From contig NEEC01000008.1 of NCBI GenBank assembly GCA_002189035.1, positions 310,001 to 374,000 on the forward strand: 64,000 nt of DNA, written 5' to 3'. The notes below the pieces were generated by a model. It searched no databases and was not told where the DNA came from. It saw only the letters and a program-made list of their open reading frames with translations. The position numbers and the translations under genes were made by a program. This document shows positions 336 through 57,830 of the stretch, one piece after another. Source of the stretch: Utricularia gibba. Taxonomy: Eukaryota; Plantae; Magnoliophyta. Position 1 is the first letter of the stretch, and each line of letters starts with the position of its first letter.

Positions 336-1842
336 ACATAAACACATCAAAAAAGTTGAGGCTTCGATTCAATATTCCTACAGAATATCAATTGTGGGAT
401 AAGGAAGAGGATGAAGAGATCGTTGGTGATATTCCAGAACGTGTTGGTCCTAGGGGTTTTGCTATCAGTACTGAGCACCTTAGATGTGACTTGTGTGTGC
501 CAGTGGTACCATTTATGTTGCAAGTTTTGACATGCCTTCAAATTCCATTTTCACATTTGACTCCTAAGTCAGTGGCATATATATTGGCATGTGTTTACAT
601 TGCTTGTGAGGAAAGCATTCCCCTAGAATCGTCTATTTTTTTGCTGTGAGCATGTGTAGTAGAATAAAGGATTCACCAAATTATGTGATAAAGGGTAAGT
701 CTACAATTAAATTAGTGAAAGGTCTACGAAGTGGCTATGATAGTTGGTGGAAAGTTTTGTATGGGTTTCTCTCTTGAAGATTTACCAAATGATTTCCCAC
801 GCACACTTCCAAATTCTCATCTTATTGGAAAACCACAAGGTATTTTATGTGTTAAACAATTTTTTATACTATGTTCTTTTATGAGAATTGTTCTGATTTT
901 ATTGATCTAATTTACTTATGCTTACTATTAGGTGTTGAGATGTTACCAAGGGATGTCGTTGATGAATTCATTGCTTTCTTTAAAGGACAGACTAGGTCAT
1001 TGACTACAATCTTACCTTCCATCTTTAGAATACGGGGCACAGCCAAGTTTTGGTGTGGGAAAAAAAGAATTACAAAGAAGGATGATGATGTGGATGATCA
1101 AAGTGGAAATGATGCTGATAATTTACATGAAGATGTGGCGGTTGACAATGAAACAAATGATTTGGCAGCTGAAAATGAGGCGTTGAAGCAGCAACTAAAG
1201 TGATATCAATCCAGATGGCCTTCTTTCTATGAATCAAGTAGTCATATTCCAACGGTGCGGAAATTAGTAGTATTCGACGTCAATGGGATTTTTGCTGATA
1301 TTATTTTTCATTCATCATCAACCATCAAAGGGCATCCAGATAAGCGGATTTATGGGCGAGCAGGTATGGTATTTATTTAGTATTTCACACATTTGCAACA
1401 TATAGTTAGTTGCTAATTTATTGACTTGACTTTATTGCATATGTTATATTTTCAGTGTTTTTAAGACCAAATGCTAGGGAGTTTATGGAATGGTGTATGC
1501 AACATTTTGATGTTGCACTATGGTCCTCATGTGGAGGGTAATATACAAAATATTATATTATCTTTTTTATATATATGTTTTACATGTTATTCTTTTTGTA
1601 ACAGTGCACAACTAAACCAAGTCGAATATTGGATGTTTGGCGAGAAGATGTCAAATTTGGCATTCATATGGGATGGAACGAAATGCATCACCACAAACCT
1701 TCGAGTCCTCAAGAAGCCAACAAGTATAGTTTTGCTGAAAGAGTTGCGAAAAATATGGGAGGATGATGTTTTTCATGGCCGATATACACATGGTAACACC
1801 TTGTTTGTAGATGATTCATCATACAAGTCTACAACAAATCCA
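336..1842 (+). pseudogene. Transposase_28-like/FCP1(NIF)-HAD fusion gene, copy 1 (premature stops, last exon missing)
   Basis: Translated segments KLRLRFNIP..HLRCDLCVP..SHLTPKSVAYIL, an acidic/coiled-coil linker, KLVVFDVNGIFADI, VFLRPNAREF..WCMQHFDVALWSS and LAFIWDGTKC..LKELRKIW..NTLFVDDSSYKSTTNP. In-frame TGA at about 647 and 1201; GT-AG introns at positions matching the other copies. Confidence 0.75.
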
Positions 1843-1904
1843 ATAATAATTTTAGTTAAAAATTTCATAAGTTAAATTTTATTTTTTTAGTTTAAATTAT
1901 ACTC

Positions 1905-2530
1905 TGAGAATTGTAATTGATGATTACAATGATCAGTAGAAATAGTTCATCATCGTTTTGCTTAATAAAGTATTATAAACATTTTCTCTAGTAACTGTAA
2001 TTGATGATTACGGTGATCCGTAGAAACAGGTTATCATTTCCCTATATTACTTTCAATTCTGGTAATTGTAATCTGTAATTACGGTGGCCGTAAAATTTAG
2101 AGATACAAACTATTACTCGAGTAATTTTTATTTTCTCTTTTATGCTTTTTCGGAACACTTTTGCTTAATAGACTACTATCACCATGTTTTCTAATCACTG
2201 TAATTGATGAATTATAGTGATCGACAGAAATAAACGATTATGGTTTTTCTTATATTACTTTTATTTGTGGTAACTATCATTGATGATTACAGTGATCGTT
2301 AGAAATAGGAAATTATTATTTTTTTATATTAATTTTCTTTTTTATAACTGTAATTGATGAATTGCAGTGATTGAAAGAAATATGTAATTATTGTTTTCTT
2401 TATATTAATTTCATTTCTAATAACTGTAATTGATGAATTGTAGTGATCGACAGAAATATGTAATTATTTTTTTCTTTATATATATTTTTTTATTTCAGAT
2501 AACTGTAATTAATGAATTACAGTGATCAAC
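1905..2530. repeat. AT-rich tandem repeat (~70 bp unit) with core TAACTGT-aattgatga(a)tt-RCAGTGA
   Basis: Repeated taactgtaattgatga(a)ttRcRgtgatc units; 12-nt spacer versions at 2195-2220 and 2345-2370, 11-nt versions elsewhere. Confidence 0.85.
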
Positions 2531-2879
2531 ATAAATAAAAAATATTAACATGAAAAAGTTAAATGAAACGATATTTATGATTTTTAATTTCATTTATTAT
2601 TTATAAAAGAATATATAATATAATTTGATTTTTCATTTTGTTTAAGTTATTTATTTTTCTATTGTTTAATTGTATATATTTTTGAATATATAATAATTAA
2701 ATAAAATATACATTATGAAAAATTTAATTTGATTTTTTTATTTAATATAATTTTTGAATTCTAAAAAATATATTTTAATAATATTTATTACAATATTTGT
2801 AAAAAGAATGTAATATATTTTTATTTTTTTGTAAAAAAGATAATAGTATTAAAATATGTTGTCAAAAAGAAATTCAAAA

Positions 2880-3001
2880 ATGAAAAAGAAAATCTGTAGT
2901 ATGGGTGGTTTTGACATGCAGTAGAGGTGAGATGCACACAGTGGATGGTTTTGGAACTGGGTTTTTTTGGAGTTGATGTATTTGGTAAAAACTCAGTAGT
3001 G
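2880..3001. mobile_element. Possible CACTA (En/Spm) right terminus
   Basis: Ends ...aaaactcagtagtg at 3001 (reverse complement CACTACTGAG), preceded by repeated gtggRtggtttt motifs. The partner end and TSD would lie outside the window. Confidence 0.3.
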
Positions 3002-3804
3002 TGCTACGTGCAAATTACAATGATTGATTTTCAAGCTTGATGGTAAACTAATGCTGCTAGCATATATAGTGGATGAAGCTTGTTGCATTATAAGAATATT
3101 TTGTAGCTAGCAAGAAAAGAAAAATGGCTCATTAAATTATCTTGTAGTGGCTCATTTGTAGAACAAAATTCACTATATAGAGTTTCATTAATGAGTACGG
3201 AAATCTGAATTTTATGTCAAAATTTATATATATCATATACATATTGGATGAAACTTCATTACCTACATTATTTAAACTAAGTATCTTCTACTCATTGAGT
3301 CAAATATTTTACAAAAATCAGTCTATATGTCTTCTAAAATAATAAATTATTTTTTATGTTACAAGAATATCATTACTTATGTTTTTACCTTTCAAGAAAT
3401 CATTGTGAATAAAAATGATCAACATTATGAAGACTTATTATGATATATTCGCTAATGCTTTTCTTAAAATTTTATGCATTAATGATATAAAAAAAAGGCA
3501 TAATCAAAAAGAGTTATTGTATTATAGAATTTAGGAATCAGTATAATAAAATTCATATTAATTCTTTTAACATCTTGAAGTTCATCTCTAAAAAATACAA
3601 TATTGTTAGAAATAAATTACTTTGTACACTCATACAACCCATAATGAAAAAGTTCTTTTTCTTTTACAGATTTAATTCAAGAATGCATTCATCATTTCTA
3701 GTTTCTGCTTACAAGAAGATATGAGATACCAACATTCATTGCTAGGTAGTTTGTTCATCAGATACCCAAACTACCAAAATGCCAGGAAATGAACTTGAGG
3801 ACTA

Positions 3805-4075
3805 TGTTAAAGCCTTGGACTTAGAGCAGGTTATTGGACCTAGTTTGAAGACAAAAAGAAGTATGACATGATCAGAGTAGAGTTCAACACCGGTGGGCAC
3901 ACATGGAGAACAAAAGCAAGGGAAAATAGGAGATGGCAACCTCCAGGTACTGCTCTTCCAACCTCTAGGCTTTAGTCCAAGTTTAAGCTCTAACCTTTGA
4001 TTGGTGGTAGGGCAGGCACTCTTAACGTCTAGTAGTTGGGTTGGGCTTGCTCTTCTTATTATAGATGATGGGCAC
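3805..4075 (-). repeat. Diverged LTR (3' LTR of older copy B), terminal CA lost
   Basis: Alignable to the LTRs at 12932 and 17385 (tgttaaagcc..ggacctagtttg..agttcaacacc..aacaaaag..gaaaatagga..gcaacctccaggt..ttgggcttgctcttcttatt). Confidence 0.7.
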
Positions 4076-4515
4076 TTAGGTAACTTGGTTTTATGGGTTT
4101 AACGGGTGTAAATCGTGTTTTGTTGATGGATTTACATAATTTGGGTTTAAATGAATACACGTTTGGTACGTGGGTATAAAATTGGGTTTATGGATAATTT
4201 TCATGGGAATTTACCAATACAGCCTTCCTCAACAATAAACTATTCGTCTTTATTACCATTTGTTTTCCCCTTCGTCCACCGACTTTCACACCCGATTGTC
4301 GCGGTGCTGCCGTTCGACGAGATCTCCCGATTTCACAAGTAATTGAGAGTGAAGAGCCATGGGTTAAGTCCAGATTGTATACTCCCTTTGTTGCACAGAG
4401 TTTCTCGTTTAAAATCCGTTGAATTTTGAGTCAATTTTACCGTTTACTTGTTGTAAGTGCTCGGTGTAGGTACTTTGTTCTTGCTGTTTTCTTTACTCCA
4501 GCACAGATTGCAGGT

Positions 4516-4659
4516 ATGCACAGCCCAATCGTGGTGGAAGACTCTCAGAAAAAAACGAAATGCGCCTGGAAGCCAGATGAGGAGAAAGACTTATTGCACA
4601 CTTTGAAGCAGATAGTGAAAGAAGGCTGGAAAATTGAGAATGGTTTTAGGGGTGGGTAT
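4516..4659 (+). pseudogene. Harbinger ORF1 Myb/SANT-like DNA-binding domain, truncated
   Basis: KCAWKPDEEKDLLHTLKQIVKEGWKIENGFRGGY matches the W..EE..LL..L......GW...NGF+.GY pattern of Myb_DNA-bind_3 proteins; no continuation found after the inverted repeat at 4681. Confidence 0.75.
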
Positions 4660-4680
4660 ATGTATTTTTTAAACACTTAT

Positions 4681-5378
4681 GTTTCTGATCGAACACTGAT
4701 CGCGGTGGCACCGCGTGTTGTAACATCTGGTGCCATCACTGGATTTGAAACCTTGTGTCTAAACGTGGTGCTTCGTAATATGCAACACCAATGCGGTGCT
4801 AGTTCATGACTACTCAATAGCAGCGCATTGAATGTGGCGGTAGTTGTAGCACCGCGTTTGCGAAAGAGTGCTCAACAACGAAGCACCGCACTTGTTCATA
4901 CGCGGTGCTTCCACCAACGGCGTCAGAACACTGTCTACCTTACACCGCATATATTTGCTAGATATATGCGGGTGTGCGCAGATAGTAGTTTGGCCTTATG
5001 TTGGACTCATGGGTTAGATGTATTTCACCTTCTAAGCATCCTTCAAGCAAATACCCTGTATTCCACATGAAAATGTAGGCGTAGGACGATTGTAGGTAAC
5101 TGGTATGAGCACCGTGCAGGGTAGACAGTGTTCTGACGCCGTTGGTGGAAGCACCGTGTATGAACAAGCGCGGTGCTTCGTTGTTGAGCACTCTTCCGCA
5201 AACGAGGTGCTACAACTACCGCCACATTCAATGCGCTGCTATCGAGTAGTCATGAACTAGCACCGAATTGGTGTTGCATATTACGAAGCACCACGTTTAG
5301 ACACAAGGTTTCAAATCCAGTGATGGCACCAGATGTTACAACACGCGGTGCCACCACGATCAGTGTTCGATCAGAAAC
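4681..5378. repeat. Long inverted repeat: 259-bp arms (4681-4939 / 5120-5378), 180-bp spacer
   Basis: Manual comparison of the arms gives about 7 mismatches; rich in GCACCGC/GCGGTGC motifs; no flanking TSD seen. Confidence 0.92.
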
Positions 5379-5440
5379 TTACAAAGTCAGCATACCATAG
5401 TTCACGCAAGATCCATGCAATTGCAAAGGTACATCATCCA

Positions 5441-7268
5441 TTACACAATAGCCTTGTAATGCTTCCACAATGGGTGTTCCTCGTCTATCGGACGTTCACT
5501 ACCCGTCGGCGATTGACGTGTGTGGGTACATCCATTACGTCAATGAGAGCTTCCAGGAACCACCTAATATCTCCCCCTCGAACCAGGGAACAATCATTGA
5601 CCGCGGTGTACTTGAAGGTGGTTGGGAATATGGCATTTTCGGGCTGTCCAATGTAAGCAAACAATCATTGGGTGCAAGATGGTGGAGAATGAGGGCGACC
5701 AGAAACTCACCGGGTTGTGTAGTGACTTGTATGGCGCATCATCGATGAGTAGCATATTAAGACGGTGATATTTTCCCTTGAACTTGGTGTTGGCGCCCCA
5801 TACATGATTCAAAACCTTAAGCTTAACCGTGTTGTTCCTGTTGTCGTGCACCGGATAACCTATGTCCACTGTCCTGGATCCATCCCATTGGAAGACGAGC
5901 TTGCTGGCTGCTGCAAGCCCTAGTAACCACTAGACCACATCGTGCAATTGTTCACTGAAACATGTTGTCAAAAAAAGGAAAGGTCAGCACCGTGCAGATA
6001 CCATTACCTGCTAATTGGTCGATCTTACCATCCTCTGGAAGACCAAATGGCGACGTCAAAGTGTTCCATGCAAAACTGTATCAACTCACATGCACCTGGT
6101 CGAAGATACACTACAACCACAACAAATAGTTCTGACACATGCACCAGATATTAAATGCATATGAAATACACCGTATTACCATTTCGCCCGTATATAACGG
6201 CATCCGGCTTCAATGCTCCCCACCTGACTTCACGATGATACACAATGTCCGCAAGTACACCATTGACGTCAAATATTAACAACTTACATGGTGGGGCTGC
6301 GTTATCACTCGACACTCCAACATATGGCCACCTTTGTTCATAACATGCAAGCCGACCACAGAGTTTAAGATTCTCTGCGTACAGTCTCTCCACTTCGATA
6401 TACTTTGCAGTGGCAACATCACACCCATCATCGTGTGTCGAGATCGTTTTTGGCCCATCCATGTTGCCCCTAATTTCTGGCTGCACATCTCCATCCTCTT
6501 CATGGGTCACCTCCTTAGGATCTTCATTCCTAATCTCACGTTGTCTACGGTGTCGAGGGGTTCCACACCACAAATGCTGTGTCCTAGGAGCATTGACAAA
6601 GGGGGGCAAAACGTCCTCTAGTGACTTTGTTATGCAAGAGAACAAATTCACAAACCTCCTTGCTGCACGTTTTGGCAATACCTCGATGCCTACAACGACT
6701 ACAACAACAAAGTCCATGAGTATTGTTGCAGACGACGTTAGAATATTCGAAGTAATTGTTTGTGATTACCTGATGAGTGTCCAACATTCTCTGACACTAT
6801 CAACGTTGTTGGCCATTCTGGAGTGGTGGGTGGGCATACCCATACAAAACTAGTCCACTAATCATCATATGCGCTTCTGATGTTTGTAACCAAAACCACA
6901 CCAGGTTTTCCATGAAGCGAGTAGTGCGGACTCCCCTTACATTGCACAGAAACAGAAACCGCAAAGAAGACACGCATTTCCGGGGGTATATCCCCCTCTT
7001 CACATATCTATAGAAATGCGAGTACGTGCGCCACATAATGTGGTGTAAGGTGGGAGAGTGGGATCTAGAGTGCAGCAAGTATCTGCACCAAGAAAGGGGG
7101 TGGGGGCAGTCGCAATCCACACCGAAAGTGCTTGGTGCTGACGGTGAAACTCGATGCTCCGACTCTGGACGGGGGTTCGGTGTCGAACGTTTCGCCTGGT
7201 TGTTTATCCCACATCACGTAACCGTCAGGAATTGAGAAGCAGGCATGTAGTTTCTCACACGTCAACAT
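5441..7268 (-). pseudogene. Transposase_28-like/FCP1(NIF)-HAD fusion gene, copy 2 (all exons present, frameshifts and stop)
   Basis: KLHACFSIP..KHFRCGLRLPPPPFLVQIL; PPCKLLIFDVNGVLADIV; VFLRPGACELIQFCMEHFDVAIWSS; KLVFQWDGS..LLIDDAPYKSLHNP; PENAIFP..GGDIRWFLEAL..HPLWKHYKAIV*. Confidence 0.8.
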
Positions 7269-8060
7269 CTACGAAAAACAACAGACGTAACTCATCTGTT
7301 TTGAAACGCTGAAGGCAAAGGTTCCTACCATCGCAACACTGTTGTGAAGAGGTTGTCAACCCATCTGTTTTCGCGGTGCTACTGTGCGTTTGCCGAAAGG
7401 ATGGAGGTGTAAGTGTGGAATTAATGAAGGTGTTTTGGAAAGTGTTCAATGTCAGGTGCCTTTAGTGTGCACAGGGGGGGTATTAATAGCGCTGGACAGT
7501 TGTCAACTGCGGCATTTTTTGCCAATTTTTTTTTGAAATTCGGAGCACCGGATAAGGCGGCACGTGGTGCTGCAATGTGCGTGGCGTAGCGTAGGCGTTT
7601 AGAAGCACCGCATATTACAGATCACGGTGTTTGGTGACTTTCAAGATTATTGTACTACCAATACCCTCGCTAATATGCACCAACTTGACACTCGTCTACA
7701 TCTTAAATGTTGACAGCACTGGATACGATGAAACACGCGGTACTACTAACAACTTTGGTATCATACTAGCCTCCGTAGCACCTCGTCTGAAGATCGCGGT
7801 ACTGGCTCCAATGCTCCACCATGTGGTACCATGTTACCCCATGGTAACACATGACACTATGGTACAATCCCCACACCATTTGCAGCAACAACCAAATACA
7901 ATGCAAACAAGTGTTCACGACGGAGTGTCAACTCGAGCTGAACTTGTTAAGGAGCAAAGCAAACAATTGTACTTAACAAATTCAATACAAACGACACGAT
8001 AGGTTCCGAACGAGAATCTAGGAAAACTACTAGCATCACAATGTCTAAAACAGTGCTACA

Positions 8061-9377
8061 TTAGCGGCGTCTGCGGGATGCCAGCCACTCGGTGTACATC
8101 CCCTCAGCTTGCTCGTCACGCCACCTACTCCATGCCTGATTTGAACCGAAAGATGTCGTGACGTCTTTTGCATCACTCATGTCCCCAGCTTCATCCTGGA
8201 AGTCCAATGGGACCTCATCCTCCAGGGGATCGACCACCATCTCCTTTCGAATAAGGTTATGGAGCAAAGCACATGCCAATACAATGCGATTCTGTGTGTC
8301 TACCGAATAGTGTGTATACCCAAGCTCGTTCGATCACATTTCTGGCTGATGCATGCCGCATGTTGAATAGCTCCTTCGCATTCTGAGGTACTCCATTTCC
8401 CTGGCCCCACTCCTTCAAGTGATAATAGACTCTATGGTATGGTGCCAAACAAGTGAAATATGTTCCATTATCACATATCCATTATCACATAGGTAATATG
8501 TTCTTGTGTCATCACGTATACATGGTACATGAAATCACTGGAATCACATGCGCAAGGGCTAAACAAGTGAAATACCTGGGCGTAAAAGACGAAAGACGTC
8601 GGATCGTGAGAGTGCATCGTTTAGCACCCGACTATTTGCAGCAGACCCCTCCCACCCAGCAATCACATATATAAATTTCATTTGTTCATCACATACACCC
8701 AACACGTTGATGGATATGACACCCTTTCGATTTCTGTACCTTGCAGCATCACATTTGTTAACTCGTATACTGATATATGTACCATCTATGGACCCAACAC
8801 AACCTTGCAAATACATAATCAATGTTAGATACATTCTTAAAAAGAAGCACGAAAGATGTGTCAATCTGAAGTGTTTGAACTTTCCTTCGGATGCACGTTC
8901 TCCAGCAACTACTGGAGTCTCTAAGAGCACCTCATGGAGGCAAAGCACCGCATGCAACACCTTTTGAAAGCACCGGGACACAGTCTCGGTGCTCCTCCCG
9001 TAGACATGTTTCTGCACCCGCATTTTATTATGATGATCTAATATTCCTAAAAACATGCAAACCATCTCCGGAACCATTACATATTTTCCAGCCTTTAAAC
9101 TAGAACGATTTTTTAATAGGCTACATAAAATAACCAAGGCATCTCGGCTGATTCTCAAGTTCTCAATGGATGCACTGTTGACATCACTCACCAACCTACT
9201 AATATACTCAACTTGTCTAGGAATCTTGTGTGTAAGTGAATACCTGCGTCTCCCCCTATATCCCCTATGGTATTTTTTCCAATGTAAGTATACTAACACA
9301 TTCATCTGCACCAAATATTTGGTCAAAAATGCTGCTGCCGCACTCAAGATGACATGACCCTCCATGAAAAAATCCAT
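8061..9377 (-). pseudogene. PIF/Harbinger DDE transposase (DDE_Tnp_4 type), degenerate
   Basis: GCVGSIDGTYI..YRNRKG..NVLGVCD..MKFIYVIAGWEGSAANSRVL, YHLKEW..KELFNMRHASARNVIER and CALLHNLIR; frameshifts present. Confidence 0.9.
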
Positions 9378-9845
9378 GTCCCCTCAATAGTCGAAAAAAT
9401 CGAGCAAAATAAATCCACACACACAACAACACGGATTCTGAAATTGGAAAGTCACAGATAAAAACCCACTATGTGATACTGCCATGGTTGGACAAGCGCG
9501 GTGCTACCGTGGACCAACCCACCAAGGACAGAAAGCACACTTACCGAAAGACCTAGTTTATTTGCTCCCAAAGAAGACGCGACGCCACCGGCAAATCACG
9601 AACAAAGTCTGGGTTGTAGATCTGCGTTCAAATGTGGTTCACGCAAGGGCAAAAGTGGAAGCGCCGAGCTAAGTTTAGCTAACCCCCCCCCTAGGTTTAG
9701 CTAAACCCTTTTCCACGGGTTCCCACCTGGTTTATGGACAACACGTGGGTTTATTTTTACCCACCTGAAACCCACAAACCAAACATGGGTTTATGTCTAA
9801 ACCCACGTCGCAACCAACCTAAACCCAACAACCAAACGCGCCCTA

Positions 9846-12800
9846 TGTGTAGAGCAATAGCTTCTACAAAAGAGGGGAAATGATTAAGAAATACTATGAA
9901 GCGTTTCCAAGTTACCCTTCTAGACGAGATATCCTCTGCACTACATCAATAGCATGACTTGAGATCCTTGACAACATGCATCAACAATAGCCTCTCAGCA
10001 ATACACAACTGGTGGGACTATCACGGTCGAGTTTTCAGGGGGTGTACCCAGAAATCTTTTCAGCAAAGATACATGGAAAACATGATGAATGTGGCTACAT
10101 GATGGTAACTTGAGGCAATGAGCAGCACTACCAATACACTTCTCCACTTAAAAAGGGCCATGGTAGCGAGGTCCTAGTTTGGAGATAGCTTGTTCTCTGA
10201 TAGAAACATAGTGCAAGTTTCAAAGTTAGAGCCAAACCCAATCACCTGGCATGTGATGGCAATCATGGTAGGATTTCATACATTCTTGAGCTGCTCTAAT
10301 GTGATCCCTCAAAGTGGCTAAAATGTCAAGTCCTCTTGCACAACAATAGATCCAAATCAATAGCATTGGTCTCTTGCAAATGATATTGACAAATGGTCGA
10401 AGGCACCCTATCATAAACAGCTTCAAATGATGTCATACTGATAGAGGAATGACAATTAGAGTTATAGGCATATCCTGCCCAAGATAACTAGAATGACCCG
10501 TGATGAGGATGTCAAGCATAGAAAGCCCGAAGATAGGATTCCAGAATGCGGTTTGTTACTTCTATTTGGCCATCCGTTTCTGGGTGATAGGCAAAGCTAA
10601 AGAAAAGTTGAGTGCCATTAAGCCTCAAAAGTTCTTGCCAAAACTAGCTTGTGAAAACTGGGTCATGATCCATAATAATATCTTGAGAAAGGCCATGTAA
10701 CTTGAAAATATTATCAAAGAAACTTTGGTAACATTCGTAGTAGTAAAAGCTCATTTCAAAGAGATAAAATGAGCATGCTAGAGCAATAAGTTCTTTCTCA
10801 TAAGCTAGAAAACTTTTATGAGATTCAGACAAAATCAATTGAAGTAAGAGATAGGATGTTCGTCTTGCATCAACACAGCACCGATCCCAACATTGGATGC
10901 ATCACATTCAATAACAAAAATGCGATTAAAACTAGGCAATGCCAGCACCAAAGTAGATGCCGACTATTCCTTCAACCAAGAGAAAGCTTGGTAGCCTCAA
11001 GATTCCTAATAAATTTATTCTGATGCAATAGTGTAGTAAGTAGTGCAGTCGCTGATCCATAATCTTTAATGAAACGGTGGTAGTAGCTAACTAAACCCAA
11101 AAAGGATTTTAGTATGGAAGAGTCTTGAGGAAGGAGCCATGTAGTGACAACTTCCAATTTAGAAGGATCAGTTTCCACTCCCTTAGCAAATATGATGTGT
11201 CCTACCTAACCTCATATTTCAAGAAAACACATTTGATTCCCTTCAAATATAATTGGCTCTCTTGCAGCTGCTGAAAAACCTTTCCCAAGTTAATCATATG
11301 CTCTGAGAGGGTTGAGCTGTAGACGAAGATATCATCAAAATAAACTAAGGAATGTGGGAGTTCATTTGCGGTAGGTTTTCAAAACAAATTTCCTCATCAT
11401 ATAAAAAAAAGCCTCATTCATTAACCATTAGAAGGTGGAGGGTGCATTGATCAGACATTAGGGCATCACCAGATACTCAAAGTGGCCTGCATGAGTACAT
11501 ATGGCCTATCGAATCAATAGCCATGCGAACTTGATTGAACCCTATATGAAGATCAAGCTTAGAGAAATATTTAATCCCCCAAGTTCCTCTAAGAGTTCTT
11601 CAATGATGGGGATGGGAAACTTGATAGGCGCGGTGATTTTATTCATTCGACAATAATCTCCACAAAGTCTTTAGGTACCTTCTATTTTGGGTACTAGTAA
11701 CGGGTGAGGCAAAGGGTGAAGATGAGGGCCTGATAATTCCTTTCACTAGCATTTCTTGATATTGTTTCTTGATCTCTAACTTCATATGATAGGTAGTTTA
11801 GTAGGGTCGTAGAGCTACTGGAGAGGATCCAGGTTCAAGAAGAATTTGATGATGACAAGCACAAGAAGGAGGTTATGACCTCGGTTCTTGGAAAATATCA
11901 TCGTATCTCTATGCTAGCTCGAAGATAAGAGTCATAGAGAAACATGTGGATTTTTTAGGGGATTGTTGTATACCAACCAAAGTATACATTTTTCCATTGT
12001 GTTCAAATGACATTTGCTTCAATCAAAAATTCAAGATCACGTCACCTAGTTTCATCAACCATTTCACGCCAAGAATAACATCATAGTGAAGCTTATCAAT
12101 AATGGTGAAATTGAAACACTCTTGAAATTCCCCCAACTACACAAGAACACCATCGGCACCTTCAGAGACAATGACTTTGGCTTCATTAGTAGCTAGCCGA
12201 ATAGCGTGTCTTGTGTGAGGTAGAATATTAAGACCTAGAGCAACGGTCATCTCTTGTTTGATGAAATTGTGAATACTATCAGTGTCAACCAGGACATATA
12301 CTATGTGACTTGTGATCTTGACTTCAAAGACCAACTACTCAGGTTCTTGAGTCCCCTTTGGGGGCCAATTAATGCATTCATAGATAGGAGATTCTCTACC
12401 TCAACAACCTCATTCTCAACAGTAGAATCCTCTAGTGGATCATCGCATATAACGATGTAAAAGAGTTGTTTACACTAATGACCCGTGTGATATTGTTTGT
12501 CACAATGAAAGCATAAATTGAGTCTTTGATGTTCTACAACTTCCTTACTTGTCATTTTCTTCTTAGTGGTAATTTAGAGGTGGTAGCCGGCCGAGCCAGT
12601 ACCATCGATTCCTCACTGAACTTCTCAATAGATTGTGTCCCAATTTTCAACATAAAGGCTTCAATAGGCCATGTATGTAGATCTGCAGTAGATCAAGTTC
12701 ATTCATTGAATTCATCATGGATGCTATTTTCCTTAAGGCGTGTGATTATAGGTGTTTAGATCTGTAGAGGTGTTCTAAATTTGCAAAAGATTTCGGAGCT

Positions 12801-12931
12801 TAGATGAAGTGGTTGTGTCCAAATACCATTGTGTACAAGCATTTCTTTAATCTGTCCATGGGATAGTTGGGTTGTGGCACAGGAGCATTAAATACGAGGC
12901 TTGGGTCCTTCCTAACAGATGGCAAGGAATG
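9846..12931 (-). pseudogene. Degenerate gag-pol of chromovirus copy B (5' gag and PBS missing)
   Basis: Paralogous to 13227-16980: DPSKLEVVTTWLLP..LKSFLGLVSYYHRFIKDY (RT/RH), VLVDTDSIHNFI (protease), integrase remnants; gag stops abruptly at the middle LTR. Confidence 0.85.
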
Positions 12932-13226
12932 TGATAAGGCTTTAAATCGAGAACGAGTTAAAGGACCCAGTTTGCACAAAACGAAGAACATAGTAGCAGA
13001 AAAAAGTTCAGCACAAGGTGCTCATTAAATGAGTAGCAACAAAAGAAAGAAAATAGGGAAGAGAGCAGCCTCCAAGCGGCACTCCGGTAGCCTCTACGCT
13101 CTGAGAACTCGTTCAATTCCAGCCTCTCCCCAACGATAGAGTATGCGACTTAAGATTCTACATTTGGGTTGCATTTGGAGTTGGACATGTTCTTCTTCTT
13201 GTAAGTTGTGGGCTCGGTCCACATCA
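12932..13226 (-). repeat. LTR (middle), 295 bp, TG...CA
   Basis: tgataaggctttaaatc...ggtccacatca, clearly similar along its length to 17385-17689. Confidence 0.9.
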
Positions 13227-16200
13227 ACTCCTCGGCACTTCAAGTGTAGAGCGGCAGCTTCGACAAAAGAGGGGAAACGGTTGAGAAATACCGAGAAGCG
13301 TTCCCAAGTTGCTTCCTGGATGGGGTACCCTCTCCACTACACCAATAGTGTGACTTAAGATCCTTGACGACGTGCATCAAGGACAACTTCAGGACAGTAC
13401 ACATCAGATGGATCCATCATGGTAGAGTAGTCAGGGGGAGGACCCGAGAATTTCTTCAGCAAAGATACATGGAAAACAGGATGAATGCGGCTGGATGCCG
13501 GCAACTTGAGACGGTAGGCAGCGGCGCCAATACACTTCTCCACCTGGAGCGGGCCATAATACTGAGGTCCCAATTTTGAGGGGGCTTGTTCTCTAATAGA
13601 AACTTGGCGCAATTGTCGAAGCCTAAGCCAAACCCAGACCCCTAGTCTAAAGGTGACTTCATGGTGATGACAATCGTGGTAAGACTTCATACGTTCTTGA
13701 GTTGCTTTGATGTGACCCCTTAAAATGGCTAACATGCCAGTCCTCTTGCACAATAGCAGGTCCAAATCAATAGCAATTGATTCCTGTGGGTGATATTGTC
13801 GGAGGGTTGGAGGGGTTCTGCCATAAACAACTTCGAATGGTGTCATCTGGATAGCAATATGATAACTGGTGTTATAGGCATATTTCGCCCAAGATAACCA
13901 AGAGGACCAATCAGTGGGTGGCAACCAGAGAAGGCTCGTAGATATGATTCCAAAACACGGTTTGTGACTTCTGTCTAGCCATCCGCCTACGGGTGATAAG
14001 CCGAGCTGAAGAAAAGTTGGGTGCCACTGAGCCTGAAGAGTTCTTGCCAAAATCGACTAGTGAAGACCGGATTGCGATCACTAATGACATCTTGAGGTAG
14101 TCCATGTAACTTCAAAATATTATTAAAGAAAACCTTAGCAACTTTCTTCGCCGTAAAAGCTCGTTTCAAAGGGATGAAATGAGCATACTTCGATAGCCTG
14201 TCAATTACTATCATTATCATGGAGAAGCCTTGAGATTCAGATAGCGAAACGATGAAGTCTAGGGACAAACTAGCCCAAATCGCCGACACGACAATTAGAG
14301 GTTGAAGAAGTCCTGCAGGCTGCAGGGTCTCTACCTTATTTTGCTGACAATTTCGACACATTTTCAAAACTTCAATGACATCTTTCTTCATCCCATTCCA
14401 ATAATAATCCTGCTTAAGCCTTTGGAATGTTTTACCAACACCCTCATAGAATAGATTGTGTGATTGAGTCACTAGTGTAGAGATCAACTTAGATTGGCAA
14501 GGCAGGGCAATCCAACGCTTGAAATACAATACCCCGTTAGTTAGCTCCCAATGAGGATGGCCTTGGAAATGGGCAACAAAATCGGGATATTTGAGCTGCT
14601 CCTCCTGTGCAACCCACAAGGCGTCTGGAAGGACAAGGGAGAGGGCTGCAAGGGAAGATCCGGGTGTTTCATATTTCCAGGATAGCACATCAGCAGCTCG
14701 ATTAGTTCTTCTGGTCTTATATTCCACGGTGAAAGAGTATGCCAAGAGTTTGGCAACCCAATGTTGTTGGGGCAGCATGTGTAGCTGTTGATCAAGGAGG
14801 TATTTCAATGGACAATGATCAGTTCTCACCACAGAAGATCGACTGAAATAGGAGATCGGATGATTGTCTTGCATCAACACAGCACCTATTCCAACATTGG
14901 ATGCATCACACTCAATAATAAAGGGGCGGTGGAAATCAGGTAAGGCCAAGATCGGCGTGGATGTGAGGGAGTTCCTTCAATCGAGCGAAAGCTCAGATAG
15001 CTTTGGGACTCCAAAGAAAATTAGTCCGGCGTAGTAGCGCAGTAAGTGGGGCTGTCACAGACCCATAATCTTTGATGAACCGACGGTAGTAGCTCGCTAG
15101 ACCCAGAAAAGATTTCAGTTGAGAAGGATCCCGTGGGAGAGGCCATGCAGCAATAGTCTCTAATTTGGCAGGATCAATTTCCACTCCGTTAGCAGAGACA
15201 ACTTGACCTAGGTATTTAATCTCAGACTTCAAGGTGCATTTAGATCCTTTCAATTATAATTGGCTGTCTTGCAATCTCTGGAAAACCTTACCCAAGTGGA
15301 TCATGTGCTCTAAGAGTGTCGGGCTGTAGACAAGAATATCATCGAAATAAACTAAAACAAACTTCCTCATCATATCATAAAAAACTTCATTCATTAACCG
15401 TTGGAAGTTGGAGGGTGCATTAATCAGTCCGTAGGGCATCACCAGGTACTCAAAATGGCTAGCATGAGTGCATATCGCTGTTTTCTCAATCGAATCAGTA
15501 GCCATGTGAACCTAATTAAACCCCGTACGAAGATCAAGCTTGGAAAAATATTTAGTCCCCTCAAATTCCTCTAAGAGTTCTTCAATGATGGGGATGAGGA
15601 TGGGGAACTTGACAAGAATGGTGATTTTATTCAGACAACGATAGTCTTCACATAGTCTCCAGGTACCTTCCGCCTTAGCAACAAGAGTGATGGGTGATGC
15701 AAAAGGCGAAGATGAAGGCCTAATGATCCCCTTTGATAGCATATCTTGACATTGCTTCTCAATCTCTAACTTCATATAATAGGCGGACCGATAGGGTCGT
15801 AGGGCCATCGGGCAGATCTTGGCTCAAGAAGAATACAATGGTCACAAGAACGAGACGAGGGACTTTGGCTCCTGAAAAATATCCTCATATCACTGCACTA
15901 GCTCAGAGATGAGGGTCATAGAGAAACACGAAGCCTTGGGAGGGGATTGTTGCATGCCAACCAAAAGGTATCTCCTTCCTCTATGTTCAAACAACATATG
16001 TTTCGATCGAAAATTTAAGATCACGTCACCCAATTTCATCAACCACTTCACTCCAAGAATGACATCATAGTGTAGCTTATCAATAATGGTGAAAGAAAAG
16101 CGCTCTTGGAATTCCCCTAGCTGCACCATAACATCATCCGCTCCTTCAGAAACTGTGACTTTGGCTTCATCGGTAGCCAGCCACACAACACGTCTTGCAT

Positions 16201-17342: not shown

Positions 17343-17363
17343 GGTGTGATTTCCGGATGAGGG

Positions 17364-17380: not shown

Positions 17381-17384
17381 AAGA

Positions 17385-34330: not shown

Positions 34331-36174
<1,844 letters not shown>

Positions 36175-36184
36175 GTTGGGAGGG

Positions 36185-41480: not shown

Positions 41481-41531
41481 TAATGGAATCTCTAAACATT
41501 CTAATATTTCTTCTAAAAAGGGCAACAATGG

Positions 41532-44452: not shown

Positions 44453-44638
44453 AACCAGATAGTCTCTCTCAATGATCATGAGCATTATAAATGTAATGAG
44501 ACGGAATTGCATTACGAATGTTCTGCAAAGCGAAATCAATGTTTCAATAAAAAATGCGGCACAAATATGGTCTTGAAATTTAGAAACAAGTTGCGGTTGA
44601 CGTCCCTTCTCTCAACAAATGCTATGTTTCATAGCATA

Positions 44639-46420
44639 TCAAGCAAGTGCCTTATAGTAATCCCATAATGGATGGTGAGAATCCAATGGAGCCTGTCCTA
44701 TACGATACTCATTCACGAAAGCTGACACACTGGAGGCCACCAGTGGTCCCTCCAAAAAGTCTTGTATTTCATCTCCTTTAGCCAAGGCAATGTACTCAAT
44801 ATTCTTATGGGTGTACGCCATAGGGAAGATGGTATTATCATGTTGTTGAAAATTTCAAGATACAAGAGTGTAACATATAATATTAAGAGAATTACAATCA
44901 CTTACTGGATTCCTAATTGACTTAAATGGCGAGTCATCAATAAGAAGTATGTTGTTACTATGATACTTTCCTTCAAATCCTGCATCTGGATGCCATAAGT
45001 TCTCAAACTCTTTTAGCATCACATTCTTCGCACGATTGTCATGAGTATGCACATCTGTTTCACTCGTTTTTGAGGCATCCCATACAAAAGCCAATCTATT
45101 GGCCTCTTAGAGCCAAAGACCTACTTCACTATCCCATCAAGTTTTGCCCTATAACAGAGTTTCAACATAAGTCATGTATATCAAACAACACAAATACGCA
45201 AAAAAGTTTATGATGTCAATATTATGTGCCCCGTGATGACTATATCCTCACGTCAAAGTGCTCCATACACCACTCAATGAACTGCCGGGCATGAGGTCGT
45301 AGGAAAACTATAAAAACCAAAAAACACAAAGCATTGCATTAGAGTCGTATAACGTACAAACACTGAATATATTACCTTCACCTTACCATATTTATCATAG
45401 ATGACTATGTCAGGCTTTCGTGGTGGTCTTTGAGACCGACCTCGAAACACAATATCGGCCAACACACCATTCACATCTAACACAATCAACTTTGTTGGAG
45501 GTTTCACATCAATAGTTGAGGGCCACCATTTATCCATCAACTCTCATACCACTTCAATTTTTCACGAAATGATCTGTTTTCTTCCAGTAGATGATTAACA
45601 TCTATTTACTGACTCTCTTGATGTACTCGAGTGTTGTTACTGGACTCTCCTACAACATCATCATCAACTTCTTCAACATGCACTTATGGACATTTACGAG
45701 ACACCCTAGTTTGACCACACCAAAAGTGAGTCCCTATGGCATTGACATATGGTGGCAATATATCATTCAAAGGTCTACTCTTGTTACCAAAAATATCAAA
45801 GAGCGCATCTACTCCTTCTCGGGGTATCCTCTCAAAACCCTACAATGAATGTATTAAGTGAGTAAAATAAATTTGGGATGAGTGTTTTACTTGTAATACG
45901 GAAAAAATGCTATACCCTTTGCCTTTCCAACATTGGATGAAGACTCAAGTCATGTGGGAAAATCTAATTCTTCCGAATGAGACACACACACAAAACTAGT
46001 TCACCAATCATTATACCCACTATGTACATTTGCTACCAATGTTATACCCGGCTTACCTTTCAGTGAGAAATTATTGGTTCTCCAATTCTTCTTACATATG
46101 CTAACTACGAAAAACACTGAAAGAGCAGGTACAAGGTGTTCTTTGGGACACACGCTCATGAATGATAAAATATATGCGACCAAACGAGGAATTAAATGAG
46201 ATAACAAAACTTCTAGGCAATTCAATAATTCAACTAAAAATGGCTCTGTGGGTAATGTTAGTCCACATCGAAAGTGTACTAACCGCAAACCCCAACGGTC
46301 CAACCCGTAATATAAGGTCACCATCAATGGTCTCCTCATCCTCCTTGTCCCATAGGAAGAAGCTGTCGAGTATTATGAACCGCAGCCTCAATTTATCCAA
46401 TGTGCGCATTGTCTCCGGAG
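44639..46420 (-). pseudogene. Transposase_28-like/FCP1(NIF)-HAD fusion gene, copy 4 (all exons present, frameshifts)
   Basis: DKLRLRF..LWDKEDEE..RVGP.GFA, HFRCGLTLPTEPFL..LSHLIP, KPPTKLIVLDVNGVLADIVF, AFVWDAS..LLIDDSPFKSIRNP, RIGQAPLDSHHPLWDYYKALA*. Confidence 0.8.
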
Positions 46421-46807: not shown

Positions 46808-47380
46808 GTGTAATATATATTTTTTACATAAAATACTTAAATATAATGTGTTTAATTTTATTTGTATTTGTTTATTTTAAAAATATGAAAATATAATATA
46901 TACTTTGTATTATTAATTTTAAATAAAGTAAATTATGGCATATCATTCATGAATATTCCGTGATCAACTTCTGCTTACTTAGAACCAAATTCATATTTCA
47001 AAATCTATTATATGCATAATCTTCACCTAAAACGAAGGTCAAATTGAAAGTGCAAGGACCCGCAAGCCTTGATGAGAAGGCAGTAGTAGTATGTTGCCAT
47101 TGCTCACGGGAAGGGTATCAAGAGGATCAGTTCCACGGAGAGTCCCGTCGTGAGTTTTCCTTCCTTGGATCAAGAAGCGTAAAACGCAGTAGCTCTTCTA
47201 TACAGTCCTAAAATATAAATAAAATTAATTAAAAGAATTAATAAAGATACTATCTGATAAATGATTTTTAAACATATAATATTCAATTAATTAGTTTTTT
47301 TGTAGGGTAAAGTGGGTTAACCCATCTGAATTGACGCGACAATACCATTTCATTCATCAACAAACTTCCGGTGGTGGAAA

Positions 47381-49304
47381 ATGGAGTGCGCCGGAACAAG
47401 AAGCGGTAACCGGTGTGGCGTCCCGGCTTCGAGGCGGTGTCCCCGCTGCCGTGCGGTGGGATACTGTTCGCTCGCTCACCAGGTTCTATTAATCACTTGG
47501 AGTTTCCTTCGAGGACCATCGTTTTTGGCAGTTTGAAGTTATTCGCCTGCCTCGTCTGAATCTATTCTTTTCACCAAGGTGTCACACTGGAGTGTGCATA
47601 AAAGTGAGTGTAATCGGCTGATGGAGCAAATGAAGCGCGCAGATGTTTTGAATGATTTCCCATTCACATTCTCCGAAGAAGCTTCTTTGGTCAGGGATGC
47701 TGCAGATCGATCATTTTTGGGTGTTCAAATTTATAGCGTAATTTTGTATCGTCATCGCCTATTGCAGGAGACAAGATGCTCAATTTTAGAAAGTCAAGGA
47801 GTTCACCGTCTGGGAATGTGGGGTTGTGAATGCATTTGCGGATATTCCTCCATCTGTTTCGACACCGGACGGTAATCACATGTCCTGACGAAGCTTGCTC
47901 TTTGAGATTTTCATCTTTCAGAACTTGGGTTTTAAGGAGGTTCTGTTGGTATGCAGGCTGATTGATAGCTTTAGCCTTCCAAGCCACCTTTGTCCTTGTG
48001 AAGGTACACGCCATTGTGGCTTTGATTCAACAGCATCCTTTACGTGGTTTGGGTGGACATTTTCTAATTTGATCAACAGCTGAATGCAGAACCTTCTTGT
48101 TCGTTACTGGAGCTTGTGACTTGTTGGAAGAAGTACTATGAATGGAGGTGTCTCCCACTTTGTTCGCCTGCGGCTATACTTCTTCACTGGGTATACGGTC
48201 TTTGCCTTTCAAAAGAGCACGCGTTCCTTGTTCCATTTAGAGCAATTCTTACTTTCCGTTCCAGCCACTCACTGTATATTGGGCAATTCAACTTGCAACC
48301 CAGCAAGGTTTGTTGCCACAGATCAGAAATAAACTGCGGATACATTACCTTGGTACCTGCATGATTTTGAACTACAAGCTGCCCATTTATCAGCATTGCA
48401 GCTAAAGTCTTTTGTTTCTTGAAGGGGCAGAGAAAGAGCTTCTTCAGCTTGCTGTCTTTGGGGAGCTCCGAGCACTCTTCCCTGGGGTGCTGCTGCAGCT
48501 TGATGTTGTTGGACCTGCAATTCCAGATCACAGGTAGATGACCGCGGTTGCTCCTATAAAGCATCTCCAGTGTTGATATATGCATTTAATCCAGGAATCA
48601 TGAACAAATTTGGCTTCATTCCTACGCTCAATGCAATGACATATCTTGTGGCTGTAAATCTTCGGCTGAGGATTGTAGCCAAAGCACAACCAGTTCCAAA
48701 CCAGCCGCGATTAGAGTACGTCTTCACTCAGGTTATTATCATGACTGCTACGGAGAACTGATAAAGGTAGTCAGGCTTGGAGTCGCAATGAATCAATTCC
48801 CATATTTTCTGTCTCGACTGAGTTGTTTGAATGCAGGATTCAATGCCCGATATAATCGTATCTGCGAATGCGGGTGTTGCTGCCTACACAAGCTGGTTAC
48901 CATCTGTTGTGAGTTGATGGCTTGCTCTTCTTTCCCGTGTGCAGCATAACCAGTGAATGGATGCCACATGTGCTGTGCATTCTACTTCGGCCTGTGCTCA
49001 AGTAATTGATGCTCTTCCTTAAATGCATCGCAGGAACTGATCAAGAGAATCAACGTGCCCGCAGTATTTTCCGACTACTGCGAGGAGGCTTGTCATCTTG
49101 CGGCCCATTGCATGAGCTCCGTATTGGGAATTTCTCTGAACATCCAAGTACGTTATCCTCTCTTAAAAATTTAAGGCCTCTCTCCATCTGCATCGCCTTC
49201 TTGTGTTGCAGATACAGATGAATCCATTCAGACAGCCACTCCGCGTCGATGAAAAGGCTCTTAATCTCCCTTGCTATTCAAATGGCTTCATCTTTGGAAT
49301 ATGA
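47381..49304 (+). CDS. MYND zinc-finger protein (At1g70150/ZMYND15-MSS51-like), multi-exon; one apparent 1-nt frameshift
   Basis: [90 protein letters not shown]. Confidence 0.88.
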
Positions 49305-54520: not shown

Positions 54521-55749
54521 TTGCACGTATAGTTTTATAGGCATCTAGGCACACTCACATTCTCTAATTGCATGAGATACTTATAGTGTCTGAGGCGGTG
54601 TACATGGCATTATATAGGCCGCATGCATTATTGTATATTGGAAGAAGAAGAAAGAAGGGTGATGGATATTAGAGGTGCGTCTGGTTCCGAACTGTATGGC
54701 TCCAATGAACCGTTGATTCCCAATCGTGGTTCGCCATGGGCAACAGTTCCGTTTCGGTTCAGAAACGCATACCCAAACCTTGAACTAAATTGAAACCGGA
54801 ACAAAGATTCACGAACCAAACTGTAACCAGAACCGATCAGTTACTATGGGAATACGTTTTCTAGGCACCCATATGAACCATTATGGGTGTTTGGCAGTGA
54901 AGTTTTTAACAATTATTAATTTTATATATTTTAATATTATCAAATGATATATGTAACAATATTAATTTTTGTATTTCATTAGATATATTATGTGATATAC
55001 TATGTTAATTTATAAAATACCTTAGTTTAGATTACTTGATAAAATAACCTAATAAAGTATAATTAAAATTAGTATAATTTGTGACTTAAATAAATGAAAT
55101 AAATTATTAAAATGATTAAATTATTAAAATTTGAATATACATATGATAAAATTAAATTTTTTTAAACAAATACAACAAGATTATAAATCATATAAAACCA
55201 ATAAAATTATTATTTATATATTTATTTTTTAAAATGAATATTTTTGTACAGTTGTTTTTTATAATCTCTTGTAAATATTGCGTATTTTTCAAATTAAAAT
55301 CAAAACGTCATCTATTTTATAAAGTGTTTCTAAATGTCATTTATTTTTAAAACAAAAAGTAAAAAGGATTGAATAGATTAAATTTAAAAATTTACATCAC
55401 ATATTTATCACAAAATTTACATCACAAAATTTACATCACATAGTAAAAAGGTGTCTGAAGAAGATTCTAGACACACTCAAGAACGTATCAGAGTGTCTGG
55501 AAATTCGACAACCATGACCCTGAAGGACACGCTGCCCAAGCACACTTAACAGAGCTTATACATGTTCATATGTGTTCATATTGATCTAGAGGATCGCTAT
55601 TCACTGGAGCATATTTCACACAATGAAAATAGGAATTCAATGAATTTAATCGTAACGACATAATTGTCTCATAGAAAAAAAGTTAATGAAAGTATTCCAA
55701 CTACAACATAATTGTCAACAAGAACTAATATTAGAGGTTTCCTCTATCA

Positions 55750-57830
55750 CATAGGCATGCATAATACTCCCATAATGCATGTCCTTCACGTATGTGGAGC
55801 TGTCCTATTCGGTTGACATTAATATAGCTTGAAACATCATGAGCATATCGTAACTCTTCAAGGAAAGTTCGCATCTCACCATCAACATTTAGTGATGCAT
55901 CATCTCTATTAATATGTGAATAGGTACTTGGAAAAACATGATTATTTTTCTAAAAAATGTAGGGTTAGTTTTGATATATAACCAAGTGTATGTTAGAGGA
56001 GAATAACAAAAATGGCTTACCAGATTTTTCATTGACTTGAGAGGTGAGTCATCAATCAATAAGGTATTGTGACGATCATATCTTGTGTTCAATCCATTAT
56101 TGACAGCCCATATACGACTCAACTCTTTGATGTAGACCGTGTTGCTAGGATTGTTGTGAACACGTGCATCTGTGTCCATAGTCATTGATTGGTCCCTCAA
56201 GAAAATGAGTTTATCGAATAACGAAGGTGTAAAGACTCATTTAGTAATTGCTTGCATCTGCATCCTACAAAAGAAATCTCTTACAAGTATTTGTGCAATT
56301 CTAAATACCAACAAAAAAAAAAAAGATGCAACACATGTATCCACTGTGGGATGACCACAAAGCTACATCAAAATTATCCAAACACCAACTAATAAACTCA
56401 TGGGCATATGAATATAGAAAGATTGCATATATTACACTAAAAACTACCTATGATATTTCACAAAATGTTACTGCATATAACACACAAAAATAAATGTTGT
56501 GTTAATGTACCTGATCGACCATATATGATTTTGTTTAGAGGGATTCGTGACCTTGACGGTCTAGCCCTATATACGATGTATGCAAGCACATCATTTACGT
56601 TCAAGATAATCAGCTTTCATTGAGGTTTAGACGCACTCAAAGAGGGTCCAATATACGCTCAACCGCTTTCATACCAATCCAACTTATAGCGAAGCTCTTC
56701 ATTCTCCTTTCCTATCATCCACATCATTGAAACCATGCATGTGCTCATCCCTTCAACATCATTGCCATCTTATGTCCTCTCATCCCTAGACATGTCTTTA
56801 TGATACTGTAGGATTCTTCAACACACCACACCAATATCGTTTTATCCTCAACGCATCCACAAATGTTGGTAAAATATCAATAAAATTCCTTAGCATACTT
56901 GATAAGAGTATAAGATCTTTTATATCTCTCTTATGTAAGATATCAAATCTTATAATAAAATAGAATTATTATGAATAAATTCAATAAAAATATTCAATAA
57001 AAGTATTGAATATATTCAATAGTACTATACTCGATAAATATACACTTAATAAGAATACATTAAAAAAAAATTTAATAAAAATATTAAATAATAATATATT
57101 GAATATGAATATATTTAAAAGATATTCAACAAGAATAGATTGAATAAAAATAGATTAAAAAAAATTCAATAAAAATATTGAATAAGAATAGACTGAATAA
57201 AAAAATTCAAAAAAAATTCAAAAAGAATACATTGAATAAAAATAGATTCAAAAAAAATATTCAATAAAAATATTGAATAAGAATAATTCTAAAATAAATG
57301 TAATAAGAATAGATTGAATAAAAATAGATTTAAAAAAAATATTTAATAAAAATATTGAATAAGAATATAATCAAAAAATATTCAATAAAAGTATTGAATA
57401 AAAATATTCAACAAGAATAAACTCAATAAGAATACATTTAATCATAATAGATTCAATAAAAACATTCAATATGAATATTCAATAAAAATATTAAATATTT
57501 TTATTCACATTTCTTATACCTATACAATGAAAGATTTACCCTTCACCTTGCCTACTTCACTTAAATTAGGATGCATTTGAGGAAACTTGGCTTCCATTGG
57601 ATGACATATCCAAACAAAATTTGTCCATCATTCTTCAAATTCTCTTCTCACATTCTTCATCAACACCAACTTTTTTTTTTCTATTTAGGGTATAGCGGTT
57701 CCTATTTAGAGTCCTAGAGTAAACACTCATAGGAAAGAAATAACAAGGATCCACCTCAAGAGACAACTCCTCACAAATACTCACAATGGCCAACACATAT
57801 AAAATAGATCTTAGAGTCAAATGGGACAAA
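55750..57830 (-). pseudogene. Transposase_28-like/FCP1(NIF)-HAD fusion gene, copy 5
   Basis: SHLTLRSILYVLAIVSICEE, KLIILNVNDVLAYIVY, VYIKELSRIW..NTLLIDDSPLKSMKN, HVFPSTY..DASLNVDGEMRTFLEEL..HALWEYY. Confidence 0.78.

Follow-up and report, generated by a model that had tools for sequence, protein, structure and literature searches.

We analysed a window of the Utricularia gibba genome (64,000 nucleotides; assembly GCA_002189035.1, contig NEEC01000008.1, positions 310,001 to 374,000 of the forward strand; all positions below are those of the window) and found five loci, named L1 to L5 in their order along the window, that encode a fusion of an N-terminal TRP28-like block (Transposase_28, PF04195) with a C-terminal NIF/FCP1-like domain of the HAD type (PF03031). 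The five loci, all of them decayed, are likely to be copies of a single old and multi-lineage accessory gene that cut-and-paste DNA transposons carried. The first-pass annotation of this DNA had described five dispersed copies with one exon order, and this description was reproduced. Using open reading frame (ORF) pieces from two of the loci, tblastn against the window returned exactly five loci, with between-lineage high-scoring pairs at E values of 1e-10 to 1e-24, and a repeat search with all five conceptual proteins gave no sixth locus in the window. The earlier locus coordinates required only small corrections, and all five loci are placed in Table 1. For comparison, conceptual proteins were obtained by three-frame reading with X at each break and were aligned with MAFFT. 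The same order of conserved blocks was observed in all five: KLRLRF..W-DK, HFRCGL.LP..PFL, SHLTP..VAY, FF.VS and KGK in the N-terminal part, then the short, acidic and helical linker with EN..L...L.WYE, KL..LDVNG.LADI, VFLRP..F..WC..FDVA.WSS and F.WD, and at the end LLIDDSPYKS..NP followed by AIFP..LW..Y.

The coding sequence of about 460-510 codons is divided into five exons. The conserved N-terminal block (the first ~210 codons) is encoded by exon 1 together with the first 45 codons of exon 2, the remainder of exon 2 leads from an acidic stretch through the conserved EN..L...L.WYE motif to HAD motif I, and exons 3-5 encode the rest of the HAD domain and a conserved tail, so that the NIF/FCP1-type part occupies the last ~200 codons. 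The fusion is built into the gene structure, because exon 2 of L2 is a 171-codon unbroken frame from the end of the N-terminal block through the linker to HAD motif I, and because the exon 1-2 junctions of L1 and L2 have GT-AG sites and are in frame. Alignment at the DNA level was possible for the L3/L5 pair only (~80% over 38297-41532 versus 54668-57879), and all other pairs show an amino-acid identity of 35-47%. In L1, the ATG is now ATA, an in-frame stop is present at 1201-1203 and exon 1 carries two frameshifts. Exon 5 of L3 has an internal deletion, and the span of L3 reaches 43005 because a 1.3-kb insertion (41534-42834) splits its exon 1.

L5 and a decayed transposase are held together within one element. 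The terminal inverted repeats of this element begin TAGAGGTG at 54670 (+ strand) and at 61656 (- strand), and they are flanked by an 8-bp target-site duplication with a 7/8 match (atggatat at 54662-54669 and ttggatat at 61657-61664); because of these repeats and this duplication, 54670-61656 was assigned as a hAT element. The carrier of L5 thus has the short terminal inverted repeats, the 8-bp duplication and the dimerisation-domain transposase of hAT elements, and the transposase lies on the same strand as L5, ~1.3 kb upstream of it. The element around L3 is another member of this hAT family and is truncated: it keeps the gene and the left end, and its homology to the L5 element stops 30 bp before the start codon. 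The homology between L3 and L5 begins abruptly at TAGAGGTGGGTTCGGTTC (38299 and 54670), which occurs once more in the window, inverted and ending at 61656, and the limits of the element homology are 38297 / 54668 at the start and 43035 / 58002 at the end. PIF/Harbinger elements encode a DDE_Tnp_4 transposase and a Myb-like second gene, and they have terminal repeats and a 3-bp TWA duplication. A decayed, same-strand Harbinger transposase precedes L2 by ~0.8 kb, and the carrier of L2 is probably a Harbinger element. The Myb-like ORF at 4423-4806 had no Pfam match and was recognised by its Atlas features alone. The 8-mer GCACCGCR was found 17 times in the window, compared with 0.83 expected, and 12 of these fall within 4300-9504, which fits one element spanning this interval; by sequence, these motifs are candidate protein-binding sites. 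All copies had earlier been placed inside transposon DNA. This was confirmed for L5, with its terminal repeats, duplication and transposase, and for L3, which has the same hAT end; it is likely for L2, which lies between Harbinger genes, and it was not established for L1 and L4.

Several local features were also observed at the five loci and their carriers. The insertion in L3 exon 1 is flanked by a ~10-11 bp duplication, GCAACAA(A)TGGT, which would fit a MULE-like (Mutator-like element) target-site duplication. The rightmost 207 bp of the insertion are repeated in inverted orientation (86%) at 38053-38259, immediately beyond the left end of the hAT element, and these two arms do not bound a simple element. 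Intron 1 of L3 (40614-41151) and of L5 (56945-57497) is filled by an AT-rich minisatellite with units like AATAAGAATAGATTGAATAAAAATA. A module of ~500 bp is present in three direct copies with 77-84% identity, downstream of L3 (38533-39024), downstream of L5 (54898-55401) and upstream of the hAT transposase (60632-61126), and it therefore occurs twice within 54670-61656. Just downstream of L2, part of the Myb-like ORF is present twice, in a 268-nt inverted duplication (4678-4945 / 5114-5381) whose arms are 168 nt apart and 96% complementary. An inverted similarity of 28/36 between 4142 and 9804 was considered as the ends of the L2 element and was rejected, as no TWA duplication accompanies it. 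Three GCACCGCR motifs (44329-44392) lie within a 56-bp palindromic array (44296-44452) that abuts a truncated hAT transposase and the 3' end of L4. This transposase half, at 43333-44475, is located between the L3 start and the L4 stop and is convergent with L4. As possible ends of the L4 element, a 13-bp inverted pair (43299 / 47576) was rejected, since it lies in a conserved exon and has no duplication. L1 is at the window edge, between tandem arrays with periods of ~71-150 bp (2-314 and 1874-2547), and the array downstream of it begins at the expected place of exon 5.

The N-terminal half was compared with known domains by profile and feature searches. Pfam PF04195 matched exon-1 pieces of three copies (L4, E 1.1e-5, 26.0 bits; L1, E 1.2e-4, 22.6 bits; L3, E 3e-3, 18.2 bits), with an alignment that covers profile positions 6-62; the gathering score of this family is 26.2 bits, and the queries were fragments of broken genes. 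In the Atlas feature search, which uses a protein language model, an exon-1 piece of L1 fell among PF04195 clusters with a score of 0.97 (76 of 100 hits). The resemblance to PF04195, proposed earlier, is supported by both searches, and we consider the block a divergent relative rather than a curated PF04195 member because the profile scores lie just under the Pfam cut-off. The AlphaFold model of the TRP28-like piece had a mean confidence score (pLDDT) of 55.6 and was unusable. A protein library search with an exon-1 alignment gave nothing at E <= 0.01, and the 188-residue exon-2 ORF of L2 gave one low-complexity match (E 3.8e-4) and no other in protein libraries; both queries were short exon pieces and a length filter applied, and these blanks are uninformative.

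TRP28 is otherwise known from an antisense ORF in Retand elements, which are Ty3 long terminal repeat (LTR) retrotransposons (PMC11963269; PMC6317226). In these elements, it is located between pol and the 3' LTR (PMC11963269). TRP28 is reported to have no similarity outside transposons and has been reported only from transposons, and no similarity of the Retand TRP28 ORF to other known transposons was found in the Retand study, which was used to argue against a nested insertion as the origin of the ORF (PMC11963269). The gene described here was found in other places than this antisense position: L5 is inside a hAT element and L2 is behind a Harbinger transposase, and the Ty3 remnants at 9.8-17.7 kb hold no copy of the gene when searched with the five conceptual proteins. 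Like the Retand proteins, the protein of the present gene is an extra protein encoded by transposons, and its N-terminal block matches PF04195 and sits among PF04195 clusters in feature space. Unlike them, it is encoded by a five-exon spliced gene in hAT and beside a Harbinger transposase, and it is fused to an NIF-like domain.

The C-terminal half had earlier been assigned to the FCP1/NIF-like family, and several searches agree with this assignment. Pfam NIF (PF03031) matched the 28-residue exon 3 of two copies at identical profile positions (L1, E 0.003; L2, E 0.004), and exon 4 of L1 fell in NIF clusters in the Atlas feature search with a score of 0.92 (97 of 100 hits). When a profile of exon 4 was searched against 5.8 billion sequences, an 'FCP1 homology domain-containing' protein of Acorus calamus was matched (E 8.9e-9). 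Its neighbour at L001:13716-15197 is a called 269-residue gene with PF03031, and this gene can be aligned with all five C-terminal halves over ~190 residues (35-38% identity, blastp E 1e-26 to 2e-39). PDB profile searches with single exons gave only UBLCP1, at E 0.71. The structure of the Acorus gene, read by homology guidance, has three introns in common with the transposon gene in position and phase: after ..YG..G | VF.RP (phase 1), after WSSxxx (phase 2) and after ..NP | (phase 0). Two further Acorus introns, at FIW|D and DDSLG|, are missing from all transposon copies. Compared with this host gene, the transposon gene has ~300 extra N-terminal residues (the TRP28-like block and the linker), lacks a short 'LPWSKG'-type insert as well as the two introns, and is multi-copy and inside transposons. 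In Acorus calamus, two host-type NIF-like genes (L001:9339-12369 and L001:13716-15197) are arranged in tandem and convergently beside a DEAD-box helicase gene; both have D-L-N-G as motif I, and the TRP28-like part is absent from both.

The catalytic motifs of this half were then read from the alignment. Motifs II (W-S-S), III (the invariant K of L-K-E-L..W) and IV (L-I-D-D-S-P) are present in all copies in the canonical order. Motif I is D-V-N-(G/V) in the copies and N-V-N-D in L5, so that the second catalytic Asp is replaced by Asn and the canonical D-x-D-x-(T/V) is not found. The earlier description of a phosphatase-like domain is supported, with this Asn as a qualification. Host-type relatives (the Acorus genes and two genes on metagenome contigs) also have D-(L/I/V)-N-G as motif I, and the Asn is thus a trait of the host subfamily rather than a transposon invention. 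With the plant NIF/FCP1-homology HAD proteins of this D-x-N-G kind, represented by the Acorus 269-residue gene, the transposon gene shares the ~190-residue homology, HAD motifs II-IV, the Asn and the three introns. FCP1, SCP1 and CPL are phosphatases of the carboxy-terminal domain (CTD) of RNA polymerase II and have the canonical motif D-x-D-x-T. The transposon gene is of their Pfam family and has the HAD core motifs in common with them, but its motif I is D-V-N-G, and it has no BRCT or other CTD-phosphatase accessory domain.

The divergence among the copies shows the effect of selection on the reading frame. For the deep pairs, the proportion of nonsynonymous differences (pN) is 0.37-0.43, compared with a saturated synonymous proportion (pS) of 0.74-0.93. 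For L3 and L5, the nonsynonymous divergence (dN) is 0.126 and the synonymous divergence (dS) is 0.367, which gives a dN/dS of 0.34 (nonsynonymous versus synonymous, Fisher p 1.5e-10). Their nonsynonymous divergence is also lower than the divergence of the element's own 3' flank (p-distance 0.216, p 1.8e-9) and of the introns (0.173, p 0.02). Because nonsynonymous divergence is lower than synonymous, flank and intron divergence, the frame was under purifying selection for much of the divergence, and neutral decay of all copies since capture, the outcome that the first-pass annotation had named as refuting, is rejected by the L3/L5 ratio and by the deep pairs. A maximum-likelihood tree built from the HAD halves separates the five transposon copies from the four host-type sequences by a branch supported at 100/99; inside the transposon group, the tree is star-like except for L3 + L5. 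This branch, the shared fusion exon, the two intron losses and the shared gap favour one capture followed by spread among element lineages.

These data also allow other explanations of the five loci to be weighed. If the loci were Pack-type transduplicates, fragments of a host NIF-like gene would have been picked up repeatedly as non-functional cargo and would then have decayed. Such an origin would be in agreement with the broken state of all five copies, with the absence of matches in contigs of four small RNA runs, and with the three introns in common with the host-type gene, as these are predicted by capture of genomic DNA. However, nonsynonymous divergence is far below synonymous and flanking divergence, exon structure and frame are conserved across lineages at 35-47% identity, and the copies have one TRP28 fusion, two common intron losses and one clade at 100/99, all of which make this explanation very unlikely. 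Even less credible is an ordinary host multigene family whose pseudogenes lie by chance in transposon-rich DNA, with the transposases as chance neighbours. The window is indeed a mosaic of hAT, Harbinger, MULE and Ty3 remnants, and boundaries around L1, L2 and L4 were not found in it, but L5 and a hAT transposase share matching terminal repeats and a 7/8 target-site duplication, the unit of gene and hAT end recurs at another site in L3, L2 and L5 each lie just downstream of a same-strand transposase, and reports of the N-terminal domain come from transposons only (PMC11963269).

A further explanation is convergence, in which the hAT, Harbinger and MULE lineages would each have fused a TRP28 module to an NIF-like gene separately. 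The identity of the fusion exon, of the three kept and two lost introns and of the gap opposite the host 'LPWSKG' stretch in every copy stands against this, as does the single clade formed by the copies relative to the host-type genes. Although the lineages are about equidistant with unresolved inner branches, and the copies are associated with different superfamilies, we give separate fusions hardly any credence. For one accessory gene spread among transposon lineages, which we prefer, the following points must be set on the other side of the balance. All five copies are pseudogenes with stops or frameshifts (Table 1), and no intact copy is present in the window. Harbinger terminal repeats or a target-site duplication were not convincingly found around L2, where only chance-level matches were obtained, and no element boundaries (terminal repeats, target-site duplication) were found in the window for the carriers of L4 and L1. 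The PF04195 scores are all just below the Pfam cut-off, and the host sampling of the tree consists of four host-type sequences only. One lesion at a poly-A site, which could be shared or recurrent, is in the same alignment column in L3 and L5, and if shared, part of the L3/L5 divergence could postdate the death of the gene. Contigs of four small RNA runs gave no match to 1340-7330 at 80% likeness, yet this is no evidence of silence. As to the mechanism, which we infer throughout, the Asn at the acid/base position also occurs in host-type genes.

In the history that we favour, a genomic piece of a host NIF-like gene would have been captured once and fused to a TRP28-type module, and selection would then have maintained the fusion as a working helper gene that moved from one transposon superfamily to another. 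The general acid/base of HAD phosphatases is the Asp that follows the nucleophile by two residues. The domain of the transposon gene retains the nucleophile Asp, the Ser/Thr, the Lys and the DD motif, with Asn in the place of the general acid/base. Because of this Asn, slow turnover would be expected, and a binder or trap of phospho-proteins would be favoured over an efficient phosphatase; with low confidence, and judging from the motifs, the protein may thus be a slow or trapping phospho-protein binder rather than a fast phosphatase. Also with low confidence, and because TRP28 is predicted to bind DNA (PMC11963269), we suggest that the TRP28 part may anchor the protein on the DNA or chromatin of the element. 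Candidate phosphorylated partners would be the RNA polymerase II tail, a silencing factor or the transposase. Taken as a whole, TRP28-NIF would be a relative of the Retand antisense ORF and a helper protein that hAT, Harbinger and MULE elements exchange with one another, in which TRP28 would tether a catalytically slowed, CTD-phosphatase-like, phospho-binding domain to element chromatin and shift polymerase or silencing-factor phosphorylation in favour of the element. We regard this complete proposal as speculative and rather unlikely to hold in all its parts; if true, it would offer a first indication of where the Retand TRP28 ORF came from and what it does.

Transposons rarely carry genes other than a transposase, and two such genes, VANC and ULP1, gave access to the ways in which elements counter host silencing. 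Both are host-derived accessory genes in plant DNA transposons: KAONASHI MULEs carry the ULP1-like protease, and VANDAL elements carry VANC. The first-pass annotation had compared the present gene with these two, and the comparison is justified by L5, which lies with a transposase inside the element boundaries, and by the purifying selection. As with KAONASHI-ULP1 and VANC, an element carries a non-transposase gene beside its transposase, and this gene has been maintained by selection and has diversified in step with the element lineages. The present gene differs from them in its TRP28-like and NIF-like domains and in its occurrence with at least two superfamilies in the window, and an anti-silencing or other function is hypothetical for it. 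In full-text literature searches (PF04195/Transposase_28; NIF or CTD-phosphatase with transposons; Arabidopsis gene names), no paper describing a transposon gene with an NIF/FCP1 domain was found. These results support placing the family, as a variant not yet described, in the known class of transposon accessory genes under selection.

The present gene, selected and intron-bearing, is associated with at least two superfamilies of DNA transposons and couples TRP28 to a CTD-phosphatase-like domain. Since TRP28 has so far been reported only from Retand elements (PMC11963269), the common module links DNA transposons with Retand elements, and finding a TRP28-like module in hAT and Harbinger elements is relevant to how the Retand TRP28 ORF arose. 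In addition, the family provides a dated, testable capture event with three common introns, and protein phosphorylation is suggested as something that transposons may manipulate. Because the copies in the window are only fossils, the value lies in the family rather than in L1-L5 themselves.

Table 1 Positions of the five gene copies and of the transposon features associated with them.
Feature	Position	Strand	Stops or frameshifts	Structure or evidence
L1	338-1842	+	3	exons 338-838, 931-1365, 1455-1538, 1606-1842; exon 5 missing
L2	5444-7268	-	7	exons 6771-7268, 6178-6690, 6028-6111, 5711-5953, 5444-5640
L3	39487-43005	-	9	exon 1 in two parts, 42838-43005 + 41197-41516; other exons 40146-40613, 39979-40062, 39666-39901, 39487-39594
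L4	44642-46409	-	8	exons 45916-46409, 45385-45839, 45228-45308, 44906-45147, 44642-44836
L5	55734-57972	-	10	exons 57538-57972, 56509-56947, 56340-56423, 56021-56257, 55734-55949; deletion in exon 1
hAT element, 6,987 bp	54670-61656	-		holds L5 and a decayed hAT transposase; terminal inverted repeats and target-site duplication
Decayed hAT transposase	59268-60500	-		Dimer_Tnp_hAT E 1.6e-12 at 59268-59438; hAT-like_RNase-H E 0.024; ORF pieces
Left hAT terminal repeat of L3 element	38299-38321	+		17/18 match to right repeat at 61656
Second hAT transposase, N-terminal half	43333-44475	+		zf-BED E 1.7e-6; 73% nucleotide match to 60385-60492, opposite orientation
Decayed PIF/Harbinger transposase	8064-9383	-		DDE_Tnp_4 E 2.3e-7; continuation ORFs down to 8064
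Myb/SANT-like ORF, Harbinger ORF1 type	4423-4806	+		Atlas features PF12776, score 0.94, 72/100 hits

Other parts of the window are occupied by further transposon remnants and by host-like sequences. Two diverged Ty3-type segments lie in tandem at 9847-17670 (9847-13221 versus 13244-17670, 72-88% identity), with integrase ORFs at 13355-14949 on the - strand. Remnants of a MULE-type transposase are present on the - strand at the right window edge (62516-63650; SWIM zinc finger, E 0.004). Between the transposon blocks, host-like ORFs (21373-29809, 35941-36171 and 47330-47872) were named by eye only. They include a receptor-like cytoplasmic kinase (- strand), an NPF/POT-type transporter exon (25672-27126, + strand) and an intact 740-residue PPR gene (27587-29809, - strand), together with a PP2A-like catalytic-subunit C-terminal exon and a zf-MYND-like exon.

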